64,000 bases of DNA, taken from the NCBI GenBank assembly GCA_002269645.1, contig NIVC01000900.1, positions 276,117 through 340,116 of the forward strand, given 5' to 3'. Within the stretch, counting starts at the first letter, position 1, and every line of letters begins with the position of its first letter. The notes below the pieces were generated by a model. It was not told the origin of the DNA and did no database searches. It saw only the letters and a list, made by a program, of their open reading frames with translations. A program made the translations under genes and the position numbers. This stretch comes from Macrostomum lignano. Taxonomy: Eukaryota. Of the stretch, positions 6,401 through 57,155 are shown piece after piece.

Positions 6401-9400
6401 GTACGAGGGTCGAAAGGCATCATTTAATGGTGAGAATTTCAATTAGAAACGATTCTTTTTATGAATAGCTTTATTTGAATAAGGGTTCAAAAATGATTCT
6501 TTATATCCCTTCAAAGCAGTAAAAGTAAAATACCATTGAAAAATATTTTATGATCTTATATATTACCAATCATACATGTATGTATAGATTGTCAATAATA
6601 CTTCCCAAAAATTTGACTAATTCTAGACAGCCAGTTGAGTCCCAGCACCAGATACGCCTATGCTGTGGAAGCAGTAAACTCTGCTGGTGCTACCAACCAA
6701 TCCTCGCTGACAATTGTGAGCACTTTTTCGGCTGCACCAAAGTTTGTAACGCCACCAGTTGCTGAACCAATCAGGCCAGATGCATTGAGCCTGACTTGGA
6801 GTCCACCCAGCAAACCCAACGGTCCAGTGAAGTCCTACCGAGTCGAACGGCGTCAGAAAATGGTGAACAAAACAGCCGACTCTTTGAATTTGTTCAGTGG
6901 GCTCGTCTTCAAGTTTGTTGACAGTCTTGCATTGGAGCCATTCAAAGTTTACGAGTACAGAATAATTGCATGCACCGATGGCGGGTGCACCGCTTCTGAA
7001 TGGGTAAGTTTACTAAATGGTAACGAAGCGTACATTCATTTGTAGTCTATAAGCATTGCTACTCGCAAGAAAATGATGGTTTTATGAATGGTTGCAAAAT
7101 GGAGTCGAATTAACGTTTGGATCTGCGCAAACAAATTAGTTTGTGGTTCGTCAGGTTATCTGCGTCTTTGAACACCAGCTGTCAACCCGACGTTTTATAC
7201 ATGTACTTTCCTGATAATGAACAAAATTGTAAGTAAGACCATGGCACTCATGTAAGATAGTGGGCCTAGGTGATGCGAGAACAAAGCAGTGACCATAACT
7301 GCTATATCTAAGAGTAATAGCATTGTCGGTGGCTGCGTATCGACTGTCGCTTTTATCAGCGCTGTGTTGAAAACCTCTCATATTTAACATTATATCACTA
7401 ATTGCTTGCATATCGTAGTGTAGAATCGATTGTTACATAAATAATAAATTACACCGGCAAGGGTTTTCACACGTCATGTCAAAAAGCCACTACAGTTAAA
7501 CAATCTAAAATAATATTCTAGATTGAAGCAGCAACTGCGGAATCGGTTCCAACAAGCATTGAGCCTCCCAGATTAACGGCCCTAGCAGTTGATGCGCTTT
7601 TGGCTCAATGGCAACCGCCGGATCATCCAAATGGACGCATTACGGAATACCAGTTACACGACGTCACAAACAAGCGTCAGATCTATTCAGGTCTGGAAAC
7701 CATCTATCGATACGGCGGATTACAGCAAGACACGTTATACGCATTCCTAGTTTCAGCTTGCACAAGACAAGGCTGCACCAACAGTACCAGCTGGCTAGCC
7801 ACTGTTAGAACACTCGAATCACCACCTGCTGGTTTGAAAGCTCCGGGAGTGGTCCTCACAGGGAGCAGCTCGGTATTGGTTTACTGGTCAGAGCCTATTA
7901 GAGGCGGTCGGCCCATCCGGTATTCGATTGAGCAGAAAGTCGACGGCGACGACCAATTCCGGTTAGTGGCTAGTGACCTTCCCGCTTGGCAGAGGAACGC
8001 GAGTTTTACGGATCTGCAGATCAATAAGCGCTACTGGTTTAGAGTAATTGCTCACGGAGTGAAAAACTCAACGAAACTTGTCGGTCCGTCCATCATGGTT
8101 CAAACACCTGCTCGCCAGCCACCTATTGCAAGCAACATTCAGGCGTGTGAGCCTCTGAACGATGGCAGTCTGCAAATCTCTTGGAATTTGCTGCCACTGG
8201 AGCTTGGCATTGATCAGTACATTTTAACACTGATTGGTGAATTTGGCGATTTAATACAAAAGCGCTATTTGCTTCGAGAGACTTTTGGCACGGTCTCAAG
8301 TTACGACGGCTTACGGCCAAACTGTCAATACAGCGTTGCAATGATTGTCTGCCAGAATATCAGCGACTACAGTTGTCGAGCGGGCGACTGGGTACTTACT
8401 CGCACCGTTGATGGAGCACCGTTTCAAATGCCAGGCCCACTCGTGTTCGCAGTGGATGCTTATGCAGTGCAAGTGCAGTGGCAAACAGCACAGCTTACCC
8501 GAAGCCAGCAAAACATTCGCACCTTTAAAATTGAGCGTCGCAAGCTCTACGAAAATCCTGCTGCAGTTGCTGCCGAGTCTACCATCAAACTCGCTGGTCA
8601 AGTTGACGGCGGGCGTCGAAATTTTCTCGACTTCAGTCCTGACCTTACTCCCAACTCCGCTTTTGAGTACCGTCTCGTGGCTGTTAACAACTACGGCAGG
8701 ACGGCAAGTAACTGGACAGAAGTAGTAACGGCTGATGATATTCCGCAGCACGTCCCGACGCCTATCGCAGAAGCTCTGGATCCATTTAGCCTGAATGTAT
8801 CTTGGACGAACAGTGCTGAACGGAGTGGGCGGGTACTTTTGTACCGACTGGATTACAAGGTAATTTGCGGAAGGCTAGACATTAAAGTGTTTACATGTAC
8901 ATATCCGGAATTACGAAGCTCTGATATTCTGGTATTAGAAGCACTTATGTTGCAGCTTTACTCATTTTAGGCAATTCGCAGCGCGGGAATCGCAGTTGAA
9001 GGCACAGGAAAGCATATTGAGCTAGATGGTAGCCGTGGAGGTTGCATTATCGGTGGCTTATCGCCGGCTACAACCTATAATATTCGTCTCGCTGCCTTTA
9101 ACAGCCGCGGGGTCGGTTCTGGCCCCTGGACCGAAGCAACGACCTGGGAGGCGCCGCCCATTGGCCTCGCTGAAATAACAGCAACGCCAAATGCTGACGG
9201 TCGCGAGCTTTTACTTAACTGGCTTTCTCCTCGTCGTCCAAATGGTTTTGTGAAATTGTATCGGCTGAAGCATATGCTGACTGTTAACAGTAGTGTATTA
9301 TTATACGCTGGTCGTTCGACAGGTTTTCGATGGCGTCCATTAGAGCCGTACACAGTGTACAATGTAGCTCTGGAAGCGTGCACACAAGCTGGTTGCGTCA

Positions 9401-12400
9401 CTGGCCCCACAGAAAGCCTCCGCACCGCTGAGGCACGGCCCGAGGCTCAGTCGCCACCGCAAGTCGCAGCCATTATTGTTCCTGCTAACGTCAGTGGTAC
9501 TATTGAACATCCAGCTACCAAAAATTCAACAATGCACAGCAAATCTGCCGACACCTTAGCTACTTATGGGTCTTTAATGAATGTTAACCAGGCCACCAGA
9601 TACTCGATTACTGTCCGCGTGAATTGGTCTGCACCGGCTGAGCCAAATGGAAAAATTCTAATCTACCGCATCCTGCGCCGCCAACGCTCAGAAACTAGCG
9701 AAATGTTCGATACTGTCGGAAGTTTAAATTTGTCAAAGGCTGATAATGGCCGGTCAATTTTCTCCGCAACTGACTCGAGTGCAAAAGCTTGGACCAAATA
9801 CTCCTATGCCATTGAGGCTTGCAACTCTGTGGCCTGCATTAGGAGTGCCTTTGTAGAGTTGGTCACTCCAGAGACGAAGCCAGGTCCTCCAGATGTGCCA
9901 GGCGTTGCACCATTGCTTCCAATGTATTTGGTTATTTCTTGGAATCCACCCGTCCAGTCTAATGGTCGAATTATAAAATACAACATTTGGAGAAACGGCT
10001 CAATTGTCTCAAGTATCAAAGGCATAAACCAAAATAGTTCTACAATATCGTGGACAGATAAAGGCTCAGATCTTAGACCTTTCACGCCTACTCAGTAGTG
10101 GCTTGCAACTCTGCCGCCGACCCAGCACCTCCTTGTGGCCCTGCATCACCGCCTGGCATCGGTCGCACTCCAGAGGCACCACCAATAGGAGTGAAAGCGC
10201 CCCAGATTTTCTCTGTGACAGCTAATGCCGTGCACTTATCCTGGTTGCCGCCTGCGATTCAAAATGGTGTTATTACTAGGTAATGTTTCAGCTATAAAGT
10301 TTTTGCAGAAAGTACAAAATTTTATACTGTAATTTTGCTCATCCTAACTATTTTCAATTGCAGATACATGCTAAAACAAAACGAAGTTCCTCTGTTTACA
10401 AACTTACCGGCTGACACAAACACCACAGCAGTAGTCGGCTTAATGCCGTTCGCGCAGTACGCATTTCGCTTGGCTGCCTGCACTTCATCAGGCTGCACTG
10501 ACAGTCCAGTCACAACTGTGCGCACTTCAGAAGCAGCACCTGCCGATCTGGAAGCACCAATTCCGACTACTCTTGACTCCAGTCGTATAGCGATTGAATG
10601 GCAACCACCAAAACGACCAAACGGAGTTGTGACATCATACAGACTGTTGCGCAACAGTCAAAAGTTTACGGAGGTTTCCTCAACGACACTTCAGGTAGTT
10701 GACGCTGGCTTGTTGCCTGACACAGCCTATTCCTACGCAGTTGTAGCAGTCAACTCCGCCGGCGGCGTTCGCAGCGCCGATGCCATCGCCGTCACTGAGG
10801 CTGGCTCACCCGAAGGACTTCAAGCGCCTCGTATTGCTGAGCTAAACGCTACTGCTGCAGTTATAGCCTGGGTGCCTCCGTTGCGCAGCAATGGCGAATT
10901 ACGCAACTATAGCCTTGCAGTAACTCCTTTTGGCAACATTCCTTTGCCACCAACGTATCTTTCCTTCGCTTTGTTGGCCCTTCATCCGTTCACGAATTAC
11001 TCAGCTCGGCTAACAGCTTGCACAGACACTGCTTGCGCGACAACAGAGACCATTTCGTTTCGCACGTTAGAGGCACCACCAACTGGTCAACCACCGCCAT
11101 CACTGCAGCCTGTCAGACTCAACTCAACAAACGGTACGCAGGTTGGAATTCGGGTCACTTGGTTGTCGCCAAGCCAGCCGAATGGTCGTATCGTAAGCTG
11201 CCGCTTGGAAAGGCAAGCGCAACTGCATTCAGACAGCAGTTTCTCTGACGCAGTTGTCATCTTCAGCGGGGCAGATTATGATAGCGATGGGAGCTGGAAG
11301 TTTATTGACGAATCAAATGAACTCTTTCCGTACGCGTTCTACCGCTATCGAGTCGGCTGCTTCAACTCATTGCCGGAGGGCAGCTTAAGTGACTGGGCGT
11401 TAGTGCGTACAGTTGAGATGACACCATCGGAGGTCTTTGCTCCTCTGCTGTTGGTACGTTTTATACATAGTTCTTGCAACAAACGTTTTTAACAGTTTCT
11501 AACTCAGAATGCGTCTTGTATCATTAATATCATATGTTTTTTTCTGCAAAAATCAGCATTTACAGTGCAGCATTCTATTAGCATTCAACTTATCAATAAC
11601 TGTGCTTTACTCAGTCACTTGTTTTGCTTTTATTGCAGGGAGTCACCAACGTTTCCGCGACTTTACAGGTTCAATCGCCAGTAGCAAATAAGCCAAACGG
11701 TCACATAAAAAATCTCAGCATCATCCTTAACGGATACCAAATACAGCTTGACAACAACTTGCTGGTTGTCAGCCTGCGTAATCTGACACCAAACGCGGTA
11801 TACTCGACGAGGGTGGAGGCTTGCAATTCAGCGGGCTGCGGTCGCGGTCCTGCAGTAGAGTTTTCTACGCTATTTGGTGTTCCTCGGGGCCTGCGTCCTC
11901 CAGCTGTCGAGGCCACTAGCGCGAACTACATCACTCTTAGGCCTGTACCGCCTGCAAATCCGAACGGTCCCGTTGATGGGTACGAGCTTCTAGTTGAGGT
12001 CTTTGGAACAGAGACGATAAAGAGAAACTATCCAATAATACAGGCTTCCGGAGCTTGGAACGTCACCGGTTTGGACCCTTATCAAGAATTAAAAGCGCGT
12101 CTCGTAGTCAGCAATTCCAGGTTTCGCAGCGATGAAATTGTCTGGCTTCGAGTGCATACCTCACCAGCAGGTAAGATCAAATTCGTTTATTAAAGTCGAA
12201 ATTATTGCATGCGAAATTTTATTTTTCGTTTTTCATACTCCTCCATGCAGATCCCGTCTATATTCAGCCTCCACTGGCTGAGTTCTCTGGCCCTCTGGTT
12301 CGCCTTGACTGGTCCGGCAGCTTTCGATTAAACGGTCCCCTCCTGTCCTACAGGCTAACATTGGACGGCAGGTCAATAGGAGGCCTGTCTGAGACGGAAT

Positions 12401-12992
12401 TCGCTTTCAAAGAAACACCTCCAGGACCAAAATTTTATACGGTGAAGATAGAGGCTGCCACCACTATCGGTGGAGTCAGCAGTCCATTGCTTTACCTCAA
12501 TCCAGCTAGCCGTGAGTTCGAGTCCAGCTCTCCGGCCTCGGTGCAGATGATCACTCTCTCATCTGCGACATCGCTGCTTGAGGAGCAGCCCTGGCTTTTG
12601 CCCGCACTGCTGGTGGCTGGGGTGGTTATTGCTGCAGCACTGGCCGCTGCTTTCTGCGTTCTTTCCAGTCGACGAGGTGGCAGCAACGGAAGCAGCTGCA
12701 TCAGCGTCCGCGTCTTCTTGCGAGAACGGCCACCCCTACGGCGACGTCGTCCCGAAGAATAGATAGCGTCGAGCCTGCGTCTCTTCCGCGACCGCCCGCC
12801 TACTGGCAGAACGCTTCTCCACCTGAGGACTTTGACGACCTGGCCTCAAATGCAACTTTATCCTCATCCTCTCTGTACGAGCGTGTGCCACCAAACCCTA
12901 ACAGGATCTGGCCACCGCGGCCACCGCCGCCGCCGCCGCCACCGCCGCCTCTGCGAGACGCAATGAAGCTACTTAGCGACAGTAAAGTATAA
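428..12992 (+). CDS. USH2A: Usherin (USH2A)-like multi-exon gene, 3' portion: many FN3 repeats, Cys-rich insert, transmembrane helix, cytoplasmic tail. The 5' end lies outside the window.
   Basis: A chain of + strand ORFs repeats W..P..PNG.I..Y / Y.Y...AC...GC FN3 motifs with GT-AG boundaries (e.g. donors after 976 and 1922). The Cys-rich CC-repeat block at ~5470-6300 (CCEGKL..CCPGGG..CCGG..CCGD) is typical of usherin. TM WLLPALLVAGVVIAAALAAAFCVL lies at 12592-12663, followed by RERPPL as in the vertebrate usherin tail. Four apparent 1-nt deletions interrupt exons (see findings). Confidence 0.85.
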
Positions 12993-14501: not shown

Positions 14502-16591
14502 TTACGCATTGTCTGCAACTGCAGCTAGAAGTTGCGCCACCTCGACGTGACCCTCACGCTGAGCTAGCTGAGCCGCCGTCAGCCCGTCAAAGTTTCTCCG
14601 ACGCCAATCGGCGCCAGAGTTCAGCAGCAGCCGGAGCAGAGCGACTTTGGCGTTCAACGCCGACCACATCAGCGCCGTTCTGCCGCGAGAGTCGCGGATG
14701 TCAACGTTGGCTCCGGCCCTGAGCAGAGATCGAGCAATCACCAGCCGCTTAATCTCGCTGCCACCAGCTCCGCTAACCGCTCCACTCTCATCGCCGCCCC
14801 AAGCGGCGAACATGAGTGCTGTCCTGCCCCATGCGTTGCGCAAATCGATCCTTGTTGACCGGCACGTCAGCAGGCATTGGCAAACCTTTGGCGAGGCGTA
14901 GCGAGCCGCGTAGTGCAACGGTGTGCAACCGTGGCCGTCTCTGGCATTGGGATTTGCGCCCAACACGAGGAGCAAAGCGGCGCAGTCTCCCGCGCCTGCG
15001 TCCACCTGATCGCTTTCAGGTCCGGCAGCGGCGGCAGCGGCTGCGGTGGCCGCACAGTGAAGCGGCGTCAAGCAGCGCACTGAGTCGCGACAGTTGACGA
15101 TGTTTGTAGCGTAAGCGGCGTCGACGACGGACCGGTCTACCGAAGTGGCTACGTCGACTGTGACGCCAACGGCAGTTAGGGCGGCCGTCAAGGCGATGGG
15201 GCTACCGGAAGCTGCAGCTGTGCAGATTCGATCCGCCTGCCACTGGGCCAGTTGAGGCTGCTGCTGCTGCGAGTTCTATTGAGCAGGGTTAGAGAGAAGC
15301 AAACATTACCATACTTTAGGGCTGTTGTTTTTAATGCTTTTTATAATGGTTTCAAGAGTGTTTTTGAGTCTTAGTGTCCGTTTAAGTGTGTCATGGTGCT
15401 TCTCTCAGTTATTGCGAGCGTATATTTTTAAGCATTAATATTAACATAAGATAGCACACTAGCTACAGATTTATAGTACACGTGTCTATCCGAATCGCTG
15501 TACTGATTTGTGTACATAGCTTTTAAACGTTCAGTTTGATCATTTTCAAGGTCGTACAAGCGTATATAGCAGAAACTGTGTAGAGACTTATTAAACCATA
15601 CCGTAATGCTCTACTTAAAGTAATATTCTAGGAAAGTCAATTTATTCTAGAATGAATGAGGAATCACGCGCAAACAGAATGATTTAGAACCCTACATTGT
15701 TTGATCAAGGAACCGGATTCCAACAGCTCTATTTGCTTAACCCCATATATGGTAATGCCCAAACATGCATAACCGCTTAATCAAACATTTGTGACCTAAG
15801 TAAATACCCAATCCCAAACCGGTTTTTCTCCAAAATTTTGCTATAAATATAAGTGAAAATTCGAGTCAAAAATTCAGACTCAGAGCGGTCTCTAAGAAGA
15901 CTCTGAAGGAACAAAGAAGACCAATCTCTGAGGGACCCCACTTGTCCAATTGGTAAGCGTTTACCGGATTCAGTTATTTGATTGTTAGCGTTAACAAGTT
16001 AATTAATTGAGTTATACGAGAGCAGTTCATTTTCGATACATTTGAGAAAGGCCTTGTTTCCTAGGATATTCCTAGAGGGTTTATTGATTTAATTGAGTTA
16101 TCCGTTACGTTTCGGACGTAACGAAGGAGCCGCCCTTCAGGAGGACCTACCACAGAAACTTAAAGAATTCAATTGTTCATTAGGGCGCACGTTCTATTGG
16201 TAATTCCGAGCTCGAGGACCGTCAAGAAGTTCTGATTCAGATAAAAGTCAAGGACTCCCGGAGGTAGCGAGCCACCTAAGCCAAACCAAGACGTCTACAA
16301 GCCACTAAAGGATCCGCTGCAGTAAGAGTTTTTTGATTTTGCATATACTCGTACCTAGGCAATTGTTCCCCAGTGTCTAGAAGTGGGAGTTTTCGAGTGA
16401 CTGATCACCACTCTTAAACTCTTAAACTGTTTACTATTGCGTTTGATTAAATTCTGCTCCGAAGACATCCAAATAAGATGAGATTTATTTTTATAGATTT
16501 ATTAGCAAATCTACCGGTAAAAATATAAGATAAGAGCGATACTCGTACTTACGTGAGAAACCATCATGGCTGACTGTTGAACCTGCTGCAT
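14502..16591 (-). CDS. Ankyrin-repeat protein, about 270 aa, two exons: join(16553..16591, 14502..15275)
   Basis: Ankyrin motifs TPLHCAA, G.TPLHYAA, GRTALMFAA, GRTALMWSA, G.TAAQLA. ATG at 16591, 13-codon exon ending CAC|GTAAGT, acceptor CAATAG|AAC at 15275 in phase 0 and open into the ORF. Confidence 0.85.
15579..16425 (+). mobile_element. Solo LTR (family A) inside the ankyrin intron
   Basis: Begins TGTAGAG, ends CTCTTAA, flanked by 4-bp direct repeat ACTG (15575-78 / 16426-29). Homologous to 57768-58510 in the opposite orientation. Strand label is relative only. Confidence 0.7.
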
Positions 16592-17797
16592 GCTGCGTGC
16601 AGTGGCTATAACTGGCTCGTGTCCACCAAAAAATACGTCACAGCTCCGGCTGAGCCAAGCGTTTCCTTCGTTTTATATCTTCATTAAAGCATCTGGGCGA
16701 TGAAAAAAATGAAAACGAGAAGATTGACGCTGAGAGCTTCTCTGCCTGTCATTGATGGGCAGAGAGAAGCGAAAGAGAAAAGCACACAAACTCACTGCTC
16801 AAACTGCTCTTCTGCCACTCTTCGACTCAACCAACAGGCGGGCTATTCTAGCTTGCTTCTACTATTTTTCTCTCCCAATTCTTTCGCTTGCCGGGTACAG
16901 CTTTGGCACCATTCACGCTTAAGCAGTCTCTCTCAATCTGTCTCCTAGTGAGCAATGTAATGCTAAACATTTTAAGCATAAGAATTGCATCTGCAAGTTG
17001 GACTGTTGTAGCTTAGAATTCTTTGCTTAAACTTTCTATGCCATACTGAATGCAGCTCAACTAATCTACTATTTTATTTTACAGATTTATAAGTAGAATT
17101 TGCGTAAAACTTTGTTTTTTCAGGACGCACGCCGCCCATAAATTTTACATTGATGACTCATTCTAAAGCCAATCTAAAATGCGCGGCCGAGACAAAGAGA
17201 CAAAGCTTATGGGAAGCCAACTGGACTTAATTGAAGGAGAAATTCATTGTATAGACGAAACCGGCGATTCTGTTTCTGTCAATAATTCACAAGTCCCGGG
17301 GAAAGCGGAGGGTAGTTCCTGCATTACCGATAAGTCTTCCTAACTCATGAATTGGCATCGCAGAATGGCTATTGAAGAGACCACTTTTTCATCAACTTTC
17401 TGCGCTGAAGTGGCCGCCGCGGAGAGGACGCTGGAAGGAGAAATCCAACGGTAAATTCTTTGTAGAGTCAACAAAGGCGAAATTCACATGTAGATATTTG
17501 AGCCTGTCATGTCAGTAGAAGCAGATACTTCCCGAGAAAATTCGATTTCCTGTTAGAAAGCAACATCAGAAGTAGTATTATCTGAGAGCAAACACGGGAA
17601 ATACAGTGAAATCAAGTGTGAGTTTTTTAGGCCGCTTCCGTAACCATGCCAACATGACGAACAGCCAATAGAATTGTCTCTACATTCCCCCTCCCATACC
17701 ACATGTAAGGGGAAGCTCAGTGCCAATAAAATGTGATGGAGCTAAGGCGGACTCTCACTCCATCGTGTTAATATTCTGTCTCAAACCTTGTTAGAAA

Positions 17798-19764
17798 ATG
17801 CATCGCTACCCGCGAATTACAAAGCTATGTCTACCGATTGCCATGCTAATGACATGCTGCTGCCAGCTGTCTTCTGCTCTCGGCTTCCAAACGGACAGTC
17901 TGACATTCCAACGCACTTCGCTCTGCCCCACCGACGCTGCAGTGATTGCGGCGTCCAACGTTGGAAGCAACGCTGAGTGCTCGGTGCACTGCAGCCTGCA
18001 GCCGCTTTGTGACGCCTTCCACTTTGATCCGGACACTCGGCTGTGCTACACTGGCGACTCCTGCTCGACATTGGAACAATGGACGTCTGGAAGCTGCGAC
18101 ACTTATCGGCATACGGGTGCTTCTAGTAAGTGGGCTAGCACGAATGAATCTGCCAAGGAACACTATTTTCTCTGCGAAAAAAGCGACACTGACTCTTGCA
18201 GTTTGGTCCAATCAATATTCTTGATTCACACAAAAATTCAAGACAAGGTTGTTTCAGCAAGCCAACTTGTGTGAAAAGATGCTCAGAAACTCGTTGATCC
18301 GTTGTTTGTGTGTCAATTTAAACATGGAGAAGACTAAAGTTATACAAGATTTGATGTGGGCAGGGCAGTGTCGCTTCTTGGTCAGCGAAAGAAACCCAGA
18401 CGATACTCTGACTCTACACTTCTCCCACGTTAAGGATAGAGTCATTGTCGTAACGTACCTTGCCTATTTTTCAGAAAACGCTGGTCTACTGAGCCAGCTG
18501 CAGATGAAATTGTTTTACCGATTCACGCACAGCGGCTTACTGAACGAGGTGAATCCAAGGCAGTATTGCCTCACCGCTCGCAACGTGAACCTTGGGACCG
18601 ACGGTGCCCAGCTGATGGGGCACAACGACTCCTATCTGATTGCTAAGACGCCTGGCCTTGAGCACGATTTGGACTTTAATAGAAATTATTCATTCTACAT
18701 GCTAGCTAGGCATAACATGACGAGCGGGTGAGACAATATTTCAAAATTATCTTGACAATCGTGTAGTTTGTTAGAGATCAATTAGGGTAGAGATAAAGCG
18801 ATAAAGATAAGTGGAGAAGAGAATAAGGACATAGGGGGCCTGGGCAGGGAATGAGGAGGGAGGCTGGTGCAGGGAGTGAGGAGGGTGAATGGGGCAGGGA
18901 GTGAGGAGGGGGACTGGAGCAAGAAGTGAGGTGGGGGACTAGGACATGAAGTAGGGTGGGGTACTGGGGCAGAGAGGGAGGTAGGGGACTGGGGCAGGGA
19001 GTTAGGAGGGAGACTGGAGCAGGGAGTGAGGAGGGGGACTGGAGCAAGAAGTGAGGTGGGGGACTAGGACATGAAGTAGGGTGGGGTACTGGGGCAGGGA
19101 AGGAGGTAGGGGACTGGGGCAGGGAGTGAGGCGGGGACTGGGGCAGGGAGTGAGGAGGGGAACTGGGGCTGGGAAGGAGGTAGGGGACTGGGGCAAGAAA
19201 TGAGGTGGGGACTGGGGCAGAGTGAGATGAGGGGCTGGGGCAGGGCGGGATAAGGTGGGGGACTTGGCGCAGAGTGAGGAGGGGTATGGTGTAATGATTG
19301 TTCATAGAAAAAATCTGACGAGTGACTAAACTTTCAGCTACAATTTCTACCACCGGATTCAACAATGCGACGGAACCCAATCGGCTAGTACTTGGGCAAA
19401 ATATAGCCGTTCATTGTACGCCTATTTTCATTGGATGAACGGATATTTCCAGTATCAACGTTGGTCAGCTTACAACCTGTTTACTAACGATGACTCAACC
19501 AGTTTAATCTCAGTTGGCTATTCGTTCGCCGCCAACGCCGAAAGTGTGAAATTTTATTTTAACGGAAGCATCACGTACGCGGAGCCAACGCAAAATGGAA
19601 GCATTGGGAGCGCTGCTGCGAGTCGCTTCAGGTGTCTGCGACTAGGCTATAGCCTGGAAGATGATAGGAGTTTCAAGGGCACAATCCGCTGCTACGGTAT
19701 GAGCAGTCGGAGCCTCACCGGACTGGAGTTCCAGCAGCTGCAGGACTACTGCTCGATGGGCTAA
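17798..19764 (+). CDS. Secreted PAN/apple + LamG/concanavalin-like domain protein, three exons (~17798-18125, ~18364-18727, 19338-19764)
   Basis: Hydrophobic signal peptide; PAN motif C...C...P.C.AF.F......C; LamG-like C-terminus (SVGYSF..VKFYFNG..LRLG..FKGTIRCY). Phase-compatible junctions A|GTAAGT..CAG|GG and GG|GTGAGA..TTCAG|C. Confidence 0.7.
18830..19285 (+). repeat. G-rich degenerate minisatellite (GGGGACTGGGGCAGGGAGTGAGGA-like units) in intron 2 of the PAN-LamG gene
   Basis: Tandem units read directly. The Pro-rich minus-strand ORFs here are by-products of the repeat. Confidence 0.9.
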
Positions 19765-19851: not shown

Positions 19852-20628
19852 TACGAGGGCTGTTCCAAAAGTAGTAGTGTTACTTTTCATTATAACTCTT
19901 GTGCTAATGATCCAAATAACATCATTTCGCAAAATTTTATAGCGGCAACTCGATCTTCGTGGTTATAACTTTAACATCTTCAAAAACAAACAATGGAAAT
20001 AAAAGTTACATGTATGAACTAAAATGTAGCAAGAGTCCGACTATATAGACTTACAGTAAGTAAACAATCTAGCGGAATGTAGCAAAAGTACTTTTGATTG
20101 AATGCACTCAAACTTCTTTGTTAGGCCGCTGTCTATGGAAATATATCTATGGAAAAACTCGAAGAAACATATAACTTTTAAAGCAGTGAAATATTTCCCA
20201 TTTGGCTTCAGCTTCGGTGCTTTTTGCTCCCTTCCTTTTGTTGCGCCAAGTCATGTATGTGCATTCAAGTGTTGCTCAGAGGAGTGTGGTTTACATCCTA
20301 TAGGATGATGGGGCACAGTGCAGCCGAGATTCATGCTCAACTTTCATCGGCTCATTGGTTTAGTGCAGTCATTTACCGCAGTCATGCATTTTATAGCATT
20401 TACTTCAGCCAGCTTTACCATTTTTGTCAGCTTTTACTTCGAAATGTTGACTTACTGTACATTAAATGTAGCTCCTGCTACATTTTTGTTTTCATTGTTT
20501 TTTTAAGATTTCAAGTTATTATCTAGAAAATAGAATTGCCGCTCTAAATTTGTGCAAAACGATGTTTTTTGGATCATTAGAACGAGAGATATAATCAAAG
20601 TAACACTATCTTTGGAGGAGACCTCGTA
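19852..20628. mobile_element. Mariner-type MITE with ~100-bp imperfect TIRs
   Basis: Left TACGAGGGCTGTTCCAAAAGTAGT.. matches the reverse complement of the right end TACGAGGTCTCCTCCAAAGATAGT.., with similarity continuing through CTAATGATCCAAA..GCGGCAA. TA dinucleotides at both ends. Confidence 0.75.
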
Positions 20629-40156: not shown

Positions 40157-43100
40157 ATGAGTGACAAAAATTTGCATGAGCCACTGCTGAAAGACTCGCA
40201 AGATCTGCAACAGCATCCTAGTGCCATAACATCATATGATTATGATGATGTCTTGATAGGCTACTATAAATTTAGCAGCACTGCTCACGCTGCCCTGGAA
40301 CGTTTCTCTAATTGCTTCAAACAGCTGTGCATTGATGATATTGCTAAACTGGATTTTGTTCTTGAGAAGCAGCTGTTGGATCAGTCTGCTTTTGCCAGCA
40401 TTGACGAGTTTCTCTTCCGGATTTTTGAAAGTAGTCAGGTAGGTATATATTGTAGTATTTGCTGAAAGAATGAAATTAGGAGTGAATGAGGCAGTCAGCT
40501 CAACAGGATGGGGTGAATGGGGCAGCCAGTCTATCAGGATGGGGTGAATGGGGCAGTCAGCTCACCAGGATGGGGTGAATGGGGCAGCCAGTCTATCAGG
40601 ATGGGGTGAATGGGGCAGTCAGCTCACCAGGATGGGGTGAATGGGGCAGCCAGTCTATCAGGATGGGGTGAATGGGGCAGCCAGTCTATCAGGATGGGGT
40701 GAATGGGGCAGCCAGTCTATCAGGATGGGGTGAATGGGGCAGTCAGCTCACCAGGATGGGGTGAATGGGGCAGCCAGTCTATCAGGATGGGGTGAATGGG
40801 GCAGTCAGCTCACCAGGATGGCGTGAATGGGGCAGTCAGCTCACCAGGATGGGGTGAATGGGGCAGCCAGTCTATCAGGATGGGGTGAATGGGGCAGTCA
40901 GCTCACCAGGATGGGGTGAATGGGGCAGTCAGCTCACCAGGATGGGGTGAATGGGGCAGTCAGCTCACCAGGATGGGGTGAATGGGGCAGCCAGTCTATC
41001 AGGATGGGGTGAATGGGGCAGTCAGCTCACCAGGATGGGGTGAATGGGGCAGTCAGCTCACCAGGATGGGGTGAATGGGGCAGCCAGTCTATCAGGATGG
41101 GGTGAATGGGGCAGTCAGCTCACCAGGATGGGGTGAATGGGGCAGTCAGCTCACCAGGATGGGGTGAATGGGGCAGCCAGTCTATCAGGATGGGGTGAAT
41201 GGGGCAGTCAGCTCACCAGGATGGGGTGAATAGGGCAGTCAGCTCACCAGGATGGGGTGAATAGGGCAGTCAGCTCACCAGGATGGGGTGAATGGGGCAG
41301 CCAGTCTATCAGGATGGGGTGAATGGGGCAGTCAGCTCATTAGGATGGGGTGAATGGGGCAGCCAGCTCATCAGGATGGGGTGAATTGGGCAGCCAGTCC
41401 CTCATCAATATCTGTTGCTGAAAGCAGGGCTGCTGAACCCTCCTCTCCAACAGGTGACCGTGAGCAGGCTCATGACCACAATGGCTGAGGATGATCGCTA
41501 CCGTGAGTTGCGACAGAGCATCACAGACTTGTTCCGGGTGACTCGCAGCGACAGCCTTCGGCGCTACCTGCAGCCGGGGAGCTTTGTAACAGCCCAGACG
41601 CTGACGAGGGACTTGCACTGCAGCCTGCTGCTGTCCAACTTTGACCTGTTCAACTCGGACACGTTCCAGCCTCGCAGACATCTGGTTGATGGCTACATCG
41701 AAAAAATGGGGGATGCTGACCGGGGCAACGTCATCAGGGGCTACTCGGGTCTGCTGCAGCTCGCGGGGCTGACCCAGCTGGACCAGTATAGGACTACAGT
41801 GAGTCAGTCTGCAACCCTCCCAGATCGGCAGCTATCCACAAATGCACAGTGACACCAGACACAAAAAGCATAGAGTGACACCAGACACAAATGCATAGAG
41901 TGACACACCAGCCACATACATAGAGTGACACACCAGACACAAAAAGCACAGAGGGACACACCAGACACAAAAAAGCACAGAGTGACACACCAGACACAAA
42001 AAAACACAGAGTGACACACCAGACACATGCATAGAGTGACACACCAGACACATGCATAGAGTGACACACCAGACATGCATAGAGTGACACACCAGACACA
42101 TGCATAGAGTGACACACCAGACATGCATAGAGTGACCCACCAGACACATGCATAGAGTGACCCACCAGACACATGCATAGAGACACACCAGACACATGCA
42201 TAGAGACACACCAGACACATGCATAGAGTGACACACCAGACATGCATAGAGTGACCCACCAGACACATGCATAGAGTGACCCACCAGACACATGCATAGA
42301 GTGACACACCAGACACATGCATAGAGTGACACACCAGACACATGCATAGAGTGACACACCAGACACATGCATAGAGTGACACACCAGACACATGCATAGA
42401 GTGACACACCAGACACATGCATAGAGTGACACACCAGACACATGCATAGAGTGACCCACCAGACACATGCATAGAGTGACCCACCAGACACATGGATAGA
42501 GTGACCCACCAGACACATGCATAGAGTGACACACCAGACACATGCATAGAGTGACACACCAGACACATGCATAGAGTGACCACCAGACACATGCATAGAG
42601 TGACACACCAGACACATGCATAGAGTGACACACCAGACACATGCATAGAGTGACACACCAGACACATGCATAGAGTGACACACCAGACACATGCATAGAG
42701 TGACACACCAGACACATGCATAGAGTGACACACCAGACACATGCATAGAGTGACACACCAGACACATGCATAGAGTGACACACCAGACACATGCATAGAG
42801 TGACACACCAGACACATGCATAGAGTGACACACCAGACACATGCATAGAGTGACCCACCAGACACATGCATAGAGTGACCCATCAGACACATGCATAGAG
42901 TGACCCACCAGACACATGCATAGAGTGACACACCAGACACATGCATAGAGTGACCCACCAGACACAAATTCACTCTGTCCCCCACCTCTGCTCCACCCGC
43001 AGTCGGAGATTCTCCGCACCGCCCTGGATCGGGTCAGGGACCGCAGAATTGAGGAGGTCCTGCGCTCGATTCTGGAGCCTCGCGACGGCTTCCAGCTGCT

Positions 43101-46664: not shown

Positions 46665-47145
46665 GTAAAGTCGTGCTGAAGGAGGCGAAGGAGGTCCTCG
46701 ATCGGTCGCTGGCAGTTCGACAATTAGAGGATCGGGTCGAGGAACATGCAAGGGACCATGGATGTTCAGGGATGAATCATGCATAGCAGATTTCAAGGAC
46801 TCATTCGTCCATGATTCTGGGTCTAGGGCTCATATTCTCACGCGTTTGGCTAATTGAAGAAGCAGCTTGGACGTTGCGACTATATATTAAGCAGTTTATC
46901 GAGCTGGGTTTGGATAGAGTGGAAGGCATTCAAGCTCGAGTCGCTGATGAAGCTACTTACGGAAAACAAGCAGAGATGCTGCATCGCTTGAAATTATGTA
47001 AAGTTCTTGTTCTGAATTCTTTCTAGTGAGGACAGCTGGTTTGACCACTTCCCTGGTGAACAGCGAGAAACACTTGACTGTCGTGGTTCCATGCAGTGAA
47101 GGAGGTCGATCAGCAGCTGTGCTGTGATTGGTCGGGAGGCAGACG
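46665..47145 (+). pseudogene. Frameshifted copy of the C-terminal domain of the neighbouring IFIT-like gene, in opposite orientation
   Basis: DNA and peptide matches to the 48.8-49.3 kb region: VLKEAKEVLDRSLAVR; SHAFG*LKKQLG; KAFKLESLMKLL; SSEDSW..VNSEKH; DQQL..DWSGG. Contains a stop, frameshifts and a ~65-bp insertion. Confidence 0.85.
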
Positions 47146-48678
47146 TGTAAACGCCCGAACTCTCACTTCCAGACCGCAAGTCTGCAAGGGAACAATTTAT
47201 TTCTCATTTACTGTTGCTGCAGGCTCCTCTTATAGTAGTTCCAGTGCGCGTAGTTCTCTTCTTCGAATCTGGAATTACATGTAGCCGTACACGAGTGCAG
47301 ATTTTCTTTGCGAAAATTATTCAGTCTAACACAGTGATGCGCCCTAATAATCAATTTACTATCGGCAATCAGGTCCACCAGAAAGTTCCCGTCTTCTTTC
47401 AGCTAATCATGATTTATCTCTTGTGTCATACATAGCAACATCATCATGCTTTTATAAATTTACTGGGTGTGTACTCTACTTATAGTAGGGATTTATGAAT
47501 GGTCTAACTCTACAGGCCGGAGTCGGAGCTGATGAGGCCACTCCGAGTTGCCAGGTAAAGTGGCACTCAAAGTCTTTCAATATCAAAATTCGGGAACATT
47601 ATGTGATGTTTAACGCTCGTATTGTGCATGACAGAAGTAGGTTTTCTGGAACGTTAATCCCAGCGATCATCGAACTAGGTTATAACCATTTTTACACTGC
47701 CTTTTATCGATGGAGATGGATTAAAACTGTTTCAGTGCTTGTTTCCACCAAGTATTGCAAGAAAATCGCCTGCTGAATTTTTTAAATGTATCAATAGTGA
47801 TATTATCCTTGGCTTTGGGTGGGGGAATTATCATATGGATAGGGGGGGGGGGGCATTATCTTTGGGTAGGGGAATTATCATATGGGTAGGGGGGGCGTTA
47901 TCTTTGGGTAGGTATATTATCCTTGAGTAAGGATATACACTATTCCTTTCAGGTAAGGTTATTACCCTTTTAGGGGTGTTATCTTTGGGTAGCAAAAATA
48001 TTATCCCTTTTTTGTTGCCTCTCCTATGGGGGCCGAAGGTTGCTAGTCTAACTTCTCAAATTCTCCCTGCTTGTCAAGGCCCTCTTCTCTTAGCAAAGCA
48101 AGTAAGGTTTATACGACCTGGAAGTAAATTATCTTTGCCGTTTTGTAGAATCTTCAAAATTGAAAGCAATAAGCGACGAACTTTATATTTTGTTCAAATA
48201 GCAATCAAGAGTGCGCTAAACAAGGTGTCGCTACCCAGGAAACATCGAAATATTTAAAGTTTGTAAATTTACGGTTATGGACTGATGTAATATCAATAGA
48301 TACACCGTACTTATGAGTAACCTGTTTTAAAACTCTTACATAAAACTCATGACTACAAAAACGAGTATAAAAAAACTCTTGATTCGTTGCTGTGCGACTT
48401 AAACCTCTCAGCAAAGTTACAGGAGAAACGCTTGCAACCAGACAAAAATTTGAGTTATCTTGAGAATTGTGGATTGGCATATTGAGTTTGACTCAATAAT
48501 AGTTTCGTATGCAAAAAAATAGAATAAAAAACTTAAACTCTAAAAAATAAAGTAATCGAATTCAATCAACTTACATGCAATACCGAATCTACGAGTAGCT
48601 ATAGCGATTAAAAAACACTTTCAGTAGAACGGAGAAAATATCACTCTTACTTGCGATGAGACGCATGTAAGCTTAATG

Positions 48679-51312
48679 TTAAGCCTCTCGTTGCAACTCA
48701 GACTTATTCTTCTGGTTCTGAGCACCAGAAGCAGATAAACTTGAGACGCCAACTCCATCGGAGAAGACGGCCCACGTCTCCTCAGCGAACTCTGCTGCCA
48801 GATGCGCCACGTCGTAGGCCGCCCTTCGACACTCTCCGCCTCCCGACCAATCAGATTTGAGCTGCTGATTGAGCCCCTTGACTGCAATCTCAGTCGAGTG
48901 CTTCTCGCTGTTTACTGGGTAGACCCAGCGGACAATCCAGCTGTCCTCACTTGACAGAATTCTGTGCTCACGACTCACCATGAAGTTAAAGACGTCTCTG
49001 GTGTCTCTCGATTGGTGAAAGTTGGGATCAATTCGCTTCAATTCTTCTAGCAGGCATTTTCGCACCTTTTCAAGCGATGCAGCATCTTTGTTTTCTTTGA
49101 GCAGCTTCATCAGCGACTCGAGCTCGAATGCCTTCCGCTCTGTCTCCGAACTCAGCTGTTTGAACTGCTTTTTATAGTCATCTCCAAGCTGCTTCTTTAA
49201 CTGGCCAAACGCGTGAGGGTATGAAAACTCTCGACCCGATCCCTTAAGCCGAACTGCCAGCGACCGATCGAGGACTTCCTTCGCCTCCTTCAGCACCGAG
49301 ACGATCATGTTGTTCATTTCTTGAAGTCCTATGTCAGTCTCTTTTATCTGCAGCTTCGTCATGAGAAATCGATTCGATCTCATGAGGTTTCCGCGATCGC
49401 CAGCGCCTTCAGCTGACCGAGTCGAGCCCGCCTTGCTCGTTAGCAGATTGAGCTCCAAGAACTCAGCAATTCTGAGCTTTAAAGACTTCTTGAAATCGTC
49501 CGAATCCAATTCAGTTTCAATAAAGAAGCTGCTGGAATCGTCCAGAGTGAGTTCGATCTTGGCGCACAGCTCGTACAATTCTCGGCGGAAGAACAGCGGG
49601 TCTTTTCCAGCTTGAGATGATGTTGACGCATCCGCCATCACCCTTTCGGCAGTTTTCTGTTCGGACTTTCGTCGCTCGAGAATGTCGAAAATTCGAGGAG
49701 CCGCATCGCGACATCCGCACTCGAGACACTCCATCAACTTCGTCAAATCCGAGGCGGGGTCTCTGAGTAGCGACTCAGCTATCAGTGCTTGCTTGTTCTC
49801 GTAATCACTGGACAATTTTCTAAAACTTGCAGCGGCCTTAGAAAATTCATCATTCTTCATAAAATGGCGACCCAGATGCTCCAGAGCGAAATCGTTTTTG
49901 TCGTCTCGCCCCAGAGCCGTCCTGTAGAGGCCTTCGACGTCGAGCTGAACTTTGAATGTCCCGATGTTTTCGGCATACCAAGCCAGGTACTCTTCAAACC
50001 CTTCCTGATTCTGGTTCAGCAGTCGAAGAAAGTTTTCCTTCTGGTTGGGCCATATTTGGTCCAATGTTTTCTCAGCCTCAAAGGCAGCAACGCACGATTC
50101 TACAGCCTCCTTTGTTTCTCCAATTTTTATTAGGTACATGGCCTTGTAAAACTCGACTGTGGCGACATTTTTGTTGTAGACCCTGAAGGTTTCTCGTAGA
50201 GAGTCGTACGCGTCTACAGCTGTGTCTTTTCCCCATTGTTCTCGCTGAAGCTCTATAATTTTCAACTCAATCCAGATGTGACCCGGCTCACCTGCTTTTT
50301 CCTGGCCCTCTTCAAGCAGCTGGACCGCCTCCTCTTTATGGCCGGAGCTTAGAGCTTCTTTGGAAAGCTCAAGGAAGAATCCAGGATCGTCAGATACGCT
50401 TGCCACTTCTTTAGCATCCTCAAACAGCCGATTTCTAATGGCCTTTAAATTGTTTGAGTTTGACTTTCTTAAAAGATACCGAAACACTTTCAGGCAAATT
50501 ATGTACACGACTTGTGACTGCTCTTTCTGCTCTTTATCCATTCCTAGTAGAAGATTTGCAGCCTTTTCGGCCAAGCCTTGGCACAGACTGGAATACCGGT
50601 AGTTGTGCAGAATGGCTTCAGCATAGTTCGCGTAGAATGTAGCCGTCGTGAGACCTTTCTTCTCACCGACGTCTTTTGCCCTTCTCCATAGGTCCAACTG
50701 AACTCTGTCAGCGTGTTTATTCGCCGTCTGCCTATCGCAACGAGCTCTTAAGTAGGCTTCGCCATAGAGCCAGTAATAGTTGCACGCCTTGCTGTGGTCC
50801 AATAGGATCCTTGACGCCTCGGCGAAGGCACTGGCGCCAATGGCGTATTTCATTGGACCAAAGCAGTCGAAAGCGACTCCCTTCGCTGCAAACGCTCGAG
50901 CCTTGCTGTTTGGGTCAGTCCAGAGTTCGTTCAGTCTCTGCATGTCTGTTTCGAGTTCTTCAGGTCTTAGTGGCCTGCCTTTTCCTCTGCTCAGCTGCTT
51001 GAGGTGCAGCATGTCGGCCCTGATAACCAACTCGCTTGACACCATGCAGTCTTCCTGACTGTCTTGCTGTATTTGTGCATCAATTTCCAACGCTTCATCG
51101 AGATGTTTCTTGGCCAAGTCGAACTTTTTGACGCGTCTGCGAGTGTACAGGTATGCTATGGTTGCCAGGTATGCGGCCTTTTTGTGAGGCTCGCGCTTTA
51201 TCTTTTTCTTCGTCTTTTCGATCACTTCATCGATGTTTGAGTTTGTGCAGTTATCATCTGGTTTCCAGGTGAAATGGCACTCCAGCTGGTCTAACGACTG
51301 CAGGCTAGTCAT
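48679..51312 (-). CDS. IFIT: Intronless 877-aa IFIT-like TPR protein with an additional ~300-aa C-terminal region (candidate HEPN-like domain)
   Basis: N-terminal L.QLECHFTW signature (aa 7-16); AYLATIAYL..A...L.EA; KG.AF..FG...Y..G..AF..A matching the IFIT KGWALLKFG..YY.KA..AFEKAL motif; further TPR-like helices; ATG to TAA uninterrupted. The symbol denotes family resemblance, not orthology. Confidence 0.8.
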   Translation of the reverse strand: MTSLQSLDQLECHFTWKPDDNCTNSNIDEVIEKTKKKIKREPHKKAAYLATIAYLYTRRRVKKFDLAKKHLDEALEIDAQIQQDSQEDCMVSSELVIRADMLHLKQLSRGKGRPLRPEELETDMQRLNELWTDPNSKARAFAAKGVAFDCFGPMKYAIGASAFAEASRILLDHSKACNYYWLYGEAYLRARCDRQTANKHADRVQLDLWRRAKDVGEKKGLTTATFYANYAEAILHNYRYSSLCQGLAEKAANLLLGMDKEQKEQSQVVYIICLKVFRYLLRKSNSNNLKAIRNRLFEDAKEVASVSDDPGFFLELSKEALSSGHKEEAVQLLEEGQEKAGEPGHIWIELKIIELQREQWGKDTAVDAYDSLRETFRVYNKNVATVEFYKAMYLIKIGETKEAVESCVAAFEAEKTLDQIWPNQKENFLRLLNQNQEGFEEYLAWYAENIGTFKVQLDVEGLYRTALGRDDKNDFALEHLGRHFMKNDEFSKAAASFRKLSSDYENKQALIAESLLRDPASDLTKLMECLECGCRDAAPRIFDILERRKSEQKTAERVMADASTSSQAGKDPLFFRRELYELCAKIELTLDDSSSFFIETELDSDDFKKSLKLRIAEFLELNLLTSKAGSTRSAEGAGDRGNLMRSNRFLMTKLQIKETDIGLQEMNNMIVSVLKEAKEVLDRSLAVRLKGSGREFSYPHAFGQLKKQLGDDYKKQFKQLSSETERKAFELESLMKLLKENKDAASLEKVRKCLLEELKRIDPNFHQSRDTRDVFNFMVSREHRILSSEDSWIVRWVYPVNSEKHSTEIAVKGLNQQLKSDWSGGGECRRAAYDVAHLAAEFAEETWAVFSDGVGVSSLSASGAQNQKNKSELQREA

Positions 51313-52319
51313 GGATAGTTGGAAGTTTTAGTTCCTTGTTGGCTCGTGAAACATTTATAGCATTTATGTGCCTTTAAGAGCAAGCATATATGCATTATAT
51401 GCCAGCTTCAAGTACTGTCTACTGCTTAAAATGAGACTTGTGCGCTCCCATTATGTTCAGCTGTGATTGTAGAAGGTATGAATGTACGTAATAGTAGACG
51501 TTTATTTCTCTTACCCAATTTTCATTTCACTTCAACGTACAGCTTTAACTGTTCAAAATGCTATATACAATATTTTAGTACCTTGTATGCCCAGAATGCG
51601 CATTTATTCGTGCAAGCATTATATACAAGTTGAAAGTACTGTCAGCAGCCAAAATGAGACGAATCCACTTTCAAAATGCTCTTTAATGGCCGGTTGGTAT
51701 GAATGTTTGCAGCAGAAAGTTCTGTTTTGCCTTACTGAAATCTGCACTTTACCAAATTATTATTCTAAGGACTGTTTAAGACAGTTGCATTTGCAGTGGA
51801 GCAGCCAAGAAGGGGAGATGGGGGAGACGAAATCCGTTCTCCAAAGTGGTACGTGGCGCTACACCCTCCGCTTGTCATCCAGCATGAATGTACAGTATAG
51901 AAAGACGCAAAATTTTTCCTAACCCACTTAACGAACTTTCACTGTCCAGTCCAGAGCGCCGTACTGCTGATCTGTGTACGCTATACAAGACAGACCACTG
52001 TACAGACAATAAATGAAATTTAATGGAAATTTTTCCGGAAAGAAGGTTTTTTCAAGCCATAAGAAATCATTTCTACTGCATTTAGATTTTTACATGTATA
52101 TCTTTTTACATGTGTTTCTGGCAATGTTTTTTGCGGAATATTCGTACACATTTGCCAATACGAGTAAAAAGCCAAGACGATGTAAAAATTGTATTCAGTT
52201 CAGAGTCATTCTTATGCTTAGATCCATAATTTTATTCTCTTGCTCCAACCTCAACATTGTTACCCCTCCTTTGTGGGAAGAAATGGGATGCTCCGAGGGC
52301 ACGGATAGCGGCTGCTGCT

Positions 52320-56319: not shown

Positions 56320-57155
56320 CTCTCTCTCTCTCTCTCTTCACTCCGACCTGCGGCCGCCCGCGGGAGGCCGGGTCGGGGCTGCTCTGCCACCTGGATCGTC
56401 TATAGGCGGTTTTTGGCGGCCCACCCTCCGCAGGTAATCACAGAGGAGGCTGCCCTCGCCCCCCAGCACGGTATTCCAATCAACGCTGATGCCGGGATGC
56501 GAGCCTGGTGGTAGCCTGGGCAGGTTAGGAGCAGATGCTCGACCGAGTCCGACTCTCCACGGGTAATGTATCGGTCGTCAGTAGTGAGGCCGAATCGGTG
56601 GAGTGTGTCGCGCGTGAGCGGGGATTTGCGCGTTCTCAGCTGGCAAAGGGTGACCTGGCCCCATCTCGGGAAATCGTCGTGGCCAGGCGTCGGGCTCGGA
56701 TACGGGTGCATGTGGTCTCGCGTTTTTCGCCAACCTCGGATAACATGATTGATGGCAGTCCTAGCGGCGATAGGGGTGACGGAATTAGGCTGTTGTTGAG
56801 TCTCGGTAGCTCTCCCGGCCAACTCATCAGCCGCTTCGTTCCCAGGGAGGTTAGCGTGACCCGGCACCGATTGCAAGTGAATTTTGCAGCCACTCGGCAG
56901 GGCAGCGATATTAGCCCAGACGCATCGGGTGACATCGTCCGCCGCAACGGTCGGGCCGCGCAGAATCGTTTGGAGGCCGGCACGGGAATCCGTGCACAGC
57001 CTGACAGTAATGGCCGGGCTGCCGCCACTACGGAGGAGCTCAGCCAGGCGGGCAAGTGCCGCTTCGATCGCAACGAGCAAATCGCCAATTGTTCCGGCCA
57101 CACTCACCCGAGTAGCAGATTACAGTCACCCATGGCCCGTCCTACCGGCCAGCGC
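56320..57155 (-). mobile_element. 5'-truncated non-LTR retrotransposon (RNase H-containing LINE) with (GA)n tail
   Basis: RNase H motifs AIEAAL, LCTDSRAGLQ, VPGHANLPGNEAADELA; decayed C-terminal knuckle E.DSVEHLLLTCP; (CT)n at 56319-56337 is the 3' tail on the minus strand. Confidence 0.85.

Follow-up and report, generated by a model that had tools for sequence, protein, structure and literature searches.

The subject of this analysis is an intronless gene of the flatworm Macrostomum lignano, located on the reverse strand at positions 48679..51312 of a 64,000-nucleotide stretch of contig NIVC01000900.1 (assembly GCA_002269645.1, contig positions 276,117 to 340,116), which is referred to below as the window and to whose first letter all positions refer unless another contig is named. 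The gene encodes a protein of 877 amino acids (aa) in which an IFIT-like domain of tetratricopeptide repeats (TPR) is followed by a conserved, purely helical C-terminal domain, and a preliminary description made from the sequence had interpreted it as an RNA sensor of the IFIT type fused to a HEPN-type ribonuclease. The first of these identifications was borne out by structure prediction and profile searches and the second was not; what is new here is an IFIT-like protein with a conserved C-terminal domain that matches no Pfam or PDB relative. The gene and its parts are as follows.

48679..51312, reverse strand: complete single-exon open reading frame (ORF) of 877 aa with an ATG start, a member of the M. 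lignano IFIT-like gene family
49738..51312, reverse strand: N-terminal IFIT-like TPR domain, aa 1-525 (AlphaFold, Foldseek, profile search)
51265..51282, reverse strand: ECHFTW, the N-terminal hallmark of IFITs, aa 11-16 (identical to the IFIT motif)
48721..49737, reverse strand: conserved all-alpha C-terminal domain, aa 526-864, with no matching known fold (homologs, AlphaFold model)
48751..49038, reverse strand: terminal helical module, the most conserved part, aa 759-854 (23-sequence alignment)
48898..48912, reverse strand: NSEKH, aa 801-805, not of the Rx4-6H form

The gene model

The ORF is present where it had been described and its frame is uninterrupted, so that the gene consists of a single exon. 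An in-frame TAA lies six codons 5' of the start ATG, and the context of the start methionine is common to the two closest database proteins, the M. lignano hypothetical proteins P0001 (BOX15_Mlig031348g1, 64% overall identity by BLASTP) and P0002 (BOX15_Mlig030191g2, 53%); because both begin at the same methionine context, the model is regarded as complete. An open frame of 877 codons in DNA of about 45% guanine plus cytosine (GC) is far beyond chance, and the ratio of nonsynonymous to synonymous substitution (dN/dS) measured against a paralog is 0.27 to 0.37, which indicates a coding sequence under constraint. All of the motifs quoted in the preliminary description were found at the residues given for them: ECHFTW at 11-16, LKEAKEVLDRSL at 674-685, FSYP at 696-699 and PVNSEKH at 799-805, the latter including N801, K804 and H805. 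The extension beyond the size of a vertebrate IFIT is likewise real: in the AlphaFold model the TPR helices end near aa 520, leaving about 350 aa past the IFIT-sized body.

The absence of the full-length protein from the databases is explained by a second contig of the same assembly, NIVC01004191.1, which is 99.88% identical over window positions 46679-51865; what sets it apart is a single substitution together with five 1-bp deletions. The deletions (window positions 50076, 50124, 50296, 50335 and 50777) all fall within the N-terminal half of the gene, four of the five at runs of at least two A, and they break the frame, so that the protein called on that contig is cut to a fragment of 393 aa (P0003) identical to the C-terminus of the ORF. 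They are probably errors of long-read assembly.

The N-terminal half is IFIT-like

The first evidence of kinship with IFITs lies in the first helix, where the flatworm protein reads SLDQLECHFTW and IFIT1 reads SLEQLRCHFTW; the heptapeptide LECHFTW is identical to residues 16-22 of human IFIT5 and occupies the same N-terminal position. When the first 60 aa were compared with PDB sequences, seven of the eight weak matches were to IFIT1 or IFIT2. Searches with the ORF as a single sequence returned no IFIT and only weak TPR matches, while a profile of three Macrostomum sequences matched human IFIT5 at E 7.3e-5, with positions 7-182 collinear with IFIT5 13-182. With a broader profile of nine sequences the sequence signal is weaker, IFIT1 being reached at E 0.45.

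The AlphaFold model of the N-terminal half, built with nine family sequences, has a mean predicted local distance difference test score (pLDDT) of 87.9 and a predicted template modelling score (pTM) of 0.81, and when it was compared by Foldseek with the PDB (350,542 chains), ranks 1 to 5 were all human IFIT5 (E 6.6e-8 to 2.8e-6), aligned over the full length in about 550 columns with template modelling (TM) scores of 0.48-0.61. IFIT1 came next (TM 0.49-0.60), whereas other TPR proteins, such as OGT, CTR9, subunits of the APC and BBS4, reached TM 0.5 at most. Judged from the model, the N-terminal half is thus a genuine IFIT-like TPR clamp and not a generic TPR array, and the expectation of the preliminary description that IFIT1 and IFIT5 would be its nearest structural relatives was confirmed.

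Vertebrate IFITs (IFIT5 and IFIT1; PDB 4HOR, 4HOQ, 3ZGQ, 6C6K and 5UDK) share with the flatworm protein the motif L-x-CHFTW at the same position and an all-TPR body of about 480-520 aa, and among PDB chains they give the best full-length superposition. The flatworm protein differs from them in its sequence, with which theirs is only about 14-15% identical, in its additional conserved C-terminal domain of 340 aa, in being encoded by a single-exon gene and in its host. Flatworms are, to our knowledge, a group without interferons.

A conserved C-terminal domain of unfamiliar fold

The family came to light in an exhaustive HMMER search, in which a profile of three C-terminal sequences was run against 1.84 billion representative proteins and matched 28 of them at E <= 0.001. 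Among them are the M. lignano paralogs P0020, P0021 and P0025/P0037 and proteins encoded on contigs of the ENA assemblies ERZ26859043 and ERZ25074608; one match (P0029) is apparently spurious, and for five short ones (P0022, P0024, P0026-P0028) the source was not looked up. When both profiles, C-terminal and N-terminal, were used in word-indexed searches, the gain was limited to a single ENA protein and the fragment belonging to the window gene itself. The three ENA loci that were inspected have 35-39% GC, intronless family genes, neighbours of retrotransposon type and tandem family copies, features which point to a eukaryotic origin. On one ENA contig (L002) the family copies form a tandem array at 10001-12610, 16666-18762 and 20300-20590, and in the second copy the N-terminal part and the terminal module appear to occupy two different ORFs.

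Full-length proteins (860-1117 aa), several of which are known from the ENA contigs, combine an ECHF[KN]W N-terminus with the same C-terminal domain, so that the two-domain architecture is conserved beyond Macrostomum. P0001 and P0002 have it as well, and they are distinct paralogs whose low-complexity tails differ from that of the window protein. In a 16-sequence alignment the distant members are 21-29% identical across the whole of the approximately 340 aa, and the AlphaFold model of the region is confident (pLDDT 81.6, pTM 0.84) and consists of helices only, 15 in number. The C-terminal 340 aa or so are therefore a genuine, conserved and constrained domain, and the earlier proposal that the extension is a distinct domain holds. 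In every architecture read (the full-length proteins, P0020 and P0025/P0037) TPR sequence precedes the domain, and in none of these was the domain seen on any other type of sensor. Some paralogs carry further sequence behind it: P0025/P0037 bears the UniProt name C3H1-type zinc finger, the M. lignano protein P0037 having, at aa ~540-916 and C-terminal to the conserved domain, two Cys-rich units that are C3H1-type according to UniProt, and P0020 continues at aa ~490-1001 with long RGG and GGS repeats. Both kinds of appendage are typical RNA-binding additions.

No known fold was found to correspond to the domain. Foldseek comparison of the model of the whole domain with the same 350,542 PDB chains gave a best E of 0.31 with TM no higher than 0.30, and no HEPN protein stood in the top 50. 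Its neighbours were mostly 14-3-3, ARM and HEAT proteins, designed helical-repeat proteins and helical domains of ABC transporters, all of them non-significant. Sequence-profile searches of the PDB likewise returned no HEPN chain, only designed helical proteins and importin-alpha, again without significance. Two further candidates were discarded: an origin of the C-terminal half as additional TPR, for which hhalign against the family's own N-terminal TPR alignment gave a probability of just 1.4% (Pfam TPR models have no match within aa 526-864), and viral relatives, a Foldseek search of the viral structures in BFVD having produced no C-terminal match with E below 0.17.

The helical-repeat scaffolds (importin-alpha ARM, 14-3-3 and HEAT) are thus the best structural neighbours of the model, if weak ones, and the E-A-A-W ... 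N motif of the terminal module weakly resembles the Trp/Asn ligand-binding array of ARM repeats; the likeness is non-significant throughout, with Foldseek E never below 0.3 and TM never above 0.30, and with an hmmsearch E of 0.3. Within the module, the segment FxxRREHxIxxxEAAWxxxWxxxxN (aa 775-802; 48907-48990, reverse strand) is the part with the weak likeness to importin-alpha ARM repeats, at a non-significant E of 0.3, a possible sign that ligands are bound on a surface like that of ARM repeats.

Conserved residues of the terminal module

Conservation is highest in the terminal module, for which 23 sequences could be aligned and whose pattern is R781-E782 ... W792 ... W796 ... N801-x2-K804-H805 ... 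Y833-D-x2-H837-x3-E841-x2-E844. W792, W796 and E844 are invariant, and at least 90% conservation is found for R781, E782, I785, N801, K804, H805, Y833, A836, H837, A839, E841 and F842. The Asn, Lys and His that the preliminary description had singled out (N801, K804, H805) are accordingly well conserved, all three being kept, with the NSEKH motif, in about 21 of the 23 homologs; the motif is replaced in P0018 and P0021 and partly in P0013. Polar or charged side chains make up nine of the module's 15 most conserved positions, among them two His and three Glu that hardly vary, and R781, E782, N801, K804, H805, H837, E841 and E844 form a polar constellation. In the model, R781 and E782 are located in one helix and W792, W796 and N801 in the next, K804 and H805 lie just past the end of the latter, and Y833 to E844 belong to the last long helix, where H837, E841 and E844 (i, i+4, i+7) share one face.

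Paralogs and mosaic evolution

The two halves of the gene have had different histories, and two further features were recognised.

48748..49725, reverse strand: tract exchanged with the paralog Mlig031348, codons ~530-855 (against L005 7300-8550; third-position identity and dS)
46673..47148, forward strand: partial copy of the C-terminal domain (~aa 667-825), inverted and decayed (tblastn of the ORF against the window)

Compared with P0001, the C-terminal half of the protein is 86-88% identical and the N-terminal half 52-54%. Synonymous comparison with the P0001 gene (L005, 6001-8766) showed that in the N-terminal half the synonymous sites are saturated (proportion of synonymous differences, pS, ~0.8) with dN 0.41, whereas over codons 526-860 dS is 0.19 and dN 0.07. 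At the domain boundary, codon 529/530, there is a sharp breakpoint where third-position identity goes up from 0.2-0.5 to 0.8-1.0, and after about codon 855 it drops; by blastn, no similarity to the P0001 locus continues into the 3' flank. The tract is the product of recent gene conversion or recombination with the paralog, and this exchange is the reason why the C-terminal half is so much more similar to P0001 than the N-terminal half. Compared with P0002 and with the distant members, both halves are about equally diverged, from which it follows that the C-terminal domain is not intrinsically the slower-evolving one.

The inverted copy, located 1.5 kb beyond the 3' end of the gene, is 75-90% identical to the paralog locus L005 by blastn and may be a relic of duplication or conversion events. 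Taken as a whole, the behaviour of the family fits that of a sensor gene under diversification, because there are several M. lignano paralogs, tandem copies occur in another organism, the N-terminal half is saturated at synonymous sites and the C-terminal half has been homogenised between paralogs.

Surroundings of the gene

Immediately 5' of the gene a possible core promoter element was read from the sequence.

51353..51359, reverse strand: TATAAAT, candidate core promoter element, 41-47 nucleotides 5' of the ATG

A GAAA-rich stretch near 51510-51530, also 5' of the gene, was considered as an interferon-stimulated response element and rejected, its spacing, judged by eye, being unlike that of such elements.

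Elsewhere in the window, long ORFs on the forward strand at 428-12762 encode fibronectin type III repeats with a transmembrane-like segment at the end and appear to form a large multi-exon receptor or adhesion gene. An ORF on the reverse strand at 14502-15191 has strong ankyrin-repeat matches (Ank_2, E 5e-24), and another at 56400-57107, also on the reverse strand, with an RNase H match (E 4.9e-6), is likely a retroelement remnant. Three minisatellites are present: at 18833-19284 (G-rich 25-bp unit, 18 copies), at 40482-41397 (31-bp unit, 29.5 copies) and at 41868-42966 (25-bp unit, 44 copies), the last of which yields spurious long ORFs.

Discussion

The reading that we favour, with tentative confidence, is that the gene encodes an RNA binder of the IFIT type, joined to a helical, non-HEPN domain that is peculiar to the family and serves for output or binding. 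The product would be cytosolic and made up of two parts, and would belong to a multi-copy family that is lineage-restricted. Its N-terminal half, as a homolog of the vertebrate IFIT clamp, would bind single-stranded RNA, by analogy probably at 5' ends, and its C-terminal half would most likely serve as a non-catalytic output or binding module that lengthens the helical scaffold and in which a polar patch of R781, E782, W792, W796, N801, K804, H805, H837, E841 and E844 might hold RNA or a partner protein. As in vertebrate IFITs, RNA would then be bound and sequestered and partners recruited, with no cleavage. A binding module is preferred because the fold neighbours are scaffolds, the domain always stands behind TPR in the architectures read, and paralogs add RNA-binding appendages.

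Several observations weigh against this proposal. The pocket of IFIT5 that receives the 5'-triphosphate or cap is made up of E33, T37, Q41, K150, R186, Y250 and R253; the positions of K150 and R186 were the two compared in our alignment, and K150, which contacts the triphosphate, aligns with a family-invariant cysteine (Cys150), while the counterpart of R186 is plausibly the conserved R191, a match obtained only by ungapped extension of the alignment. Because the IFIT signal weakens in the broader profile and the K150 position is a Cys, RNA binding is something that we infer, as we do a function in immunity and the lack of catalysis in the C-terminal domain. With regard to catalysis, the polar constellation, as read from the alignment and the secondary structure of the model, marks a functional site that may be either catalytic or binding, and its pattern is no less suited to an active site than to a binding surface. 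Furthermore, the C-terminal model was compared by Foldseek with experimental structures in the PDB, and folds known solely from predicted structures may still match it.

The main rival is an enzyme: a novel all-alpha, non-HEPN hydrolase or nuclease acting on RNA captured by the IFIT-like clamp, with a site made up of R781/E782, N801/K804/H805 and H837/E841/E844. This is possible, although we consider it rather unlikely. The near-invariant polar cluster in a module of about 100 aa, with H837, E841 and E844 on one helix face, is what such a site would look like; fusions to C3H1-type units and RGG repeats suit a nuclease as well as a binder, and a diversified sensor half joined to a conserved C-terminal half resembles sensor-effector immune proteins. 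On the other hand, no likeness to an enzyme was obtained by sequence or structure (Pfam, PDB profiles, Foldseek), P0018 and P0021 have other residues in place of N801, K804 and H805 in an otherwise retained module, and neither the restriction of the domain to TPR sensors in the architectures read nor its weak scaffold-like neighbours point to catalysis. The fullest form of the idea, which we hold to be somewhat less probable still, is that a new family of sensor-effector proteins in animals, with this gene as its founder, exists in which an IFIT-type 5'-end clamp is combined with an undescribed catalytic all-alpha domain degrading or modifying the captured RNA; to the more specific proposal that R-E ... 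W ... W ... N-x2-K-H ... H-x3-E-x2-E would be its catalytic motif we give the same limited credence.

A weaker alternative is that the protein serves a housekeeping function, such as one in translation or RNA metabolism. It would then be a non-immune, lineage-specific TPR scaffold, its IFIT likeness the result of descent from an older TPR clamp and its mosaic structure the result of neutral conversion in a recently polyploid genome. The substitution of K150 is in keeping with this, as is the dating of the IFIT family to jawed vertebrates, where it is tied to interferon, invertebrate TPR candidates having been rejected in the same work (PMC3688568, 2013); M. lignano is moreover described as a hidden tetraploid with many duplicates (PMC5704211). 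However, a multi-copy, rapidly diverging, tandem family is unusual for housekeeping genes, and the exact IFIT hallmark motif has been kept together with the architecture of the whole domain, which makes this explanation improbable.

That the last 200 aa or so form a HEPN ribonuclease in which NxxKH stands in for the usual Rx4-6H, and that the protein is a compact counterpart of OAS/RNase L related to bacterial TPR-HEPN proteins, as the preliminary description had proposed, is now very unlikely. There is a superficial resemblance: members of the HEPN superfamily (the KEN domain of RNase L and Ire1, Cas13, Csm6, RnlA, HEPN-MNT toxins) are small and all-alpha, follow a sensor-plus-effector logic and have a conserved His with an Asn four residues before it, RNxxxH being one form of their motif, and the flatworm region is likewise all-alpha and keeps its N801, K804 and H805. 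The Arg, however, is absent, since N801 is preceded by residues that are not basic, V, D, I, S and G among them; no conserved Rx4-6H motif is found in the 16- or the 23-sequence alignment, and R830-x6-H837, which occurs in the window protein, is an accident of that sequence, its Arg being unconserved. The motif is also differently placed among the helices, at the end of one and with two more to follow. Pfam scans covering 16 whole domains and 23 terminal modules, with E allowed to reach 1 or 10, brought up neither a HEPN family nor any other that is informative, a PADLOC scan of family members found no HEPN, and these results agree with the PDB profile and Foldseek searches above; the fold modelled for the C-terminal region is an unrelated one. 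Kinship with bacterial proteins fares no better, since no bacterial relative was found among those of the 28 matches whose source was checked, which belong to M. lignano or to ENA contigs, the three inspected being of eukaryotic appearance.

A DUF1722 (YbgA-like) domain at aa 670-740, to which the UniRef name of P0001 points, is effectively refuted and hardly worth entertaining, for although PF08349 matches P0001 at E 4.5e-6, it stays below the gathering threshold on the window protein (E 0.0026-0.0055, 17.4-18.4 bits against a Pfam cut-off of 22.5), is found in just two of the 16 family members, the two closest paralogs, and a profile-to-sequence comparison of the family with E. coli YbgA by hhalign returned a probability of 0.03%.

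Automated annotations label some invertebrate proteins IFIT-like. In the literature searched there is no flatworm IFIT-like protein and no fusion of an IFIT with the present domain, and invertebrate candidates are treated only in PMC3688568.

In conclusion, an IFIT-type binder with a helical output or binding domain remains our preferred account, and at the level of the family the flatworm protein argues for an IFIT clamp that is older than interferon signalling, or else for one that was acquired independently. If the sensor-effector reading with a catalytic C-terminal domain were true, the IFIT fold would predate both vertebrates and interferon, and gene conversion would maintain the uniformity of the effector half as the sensor halves diversified. 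The question is open to experiment, because transgenesis methods for M. lignano are established (PMC7053086). The fusion itself is a defined candidate for the coupling of RNA recognition to an output in an animal without interferons.

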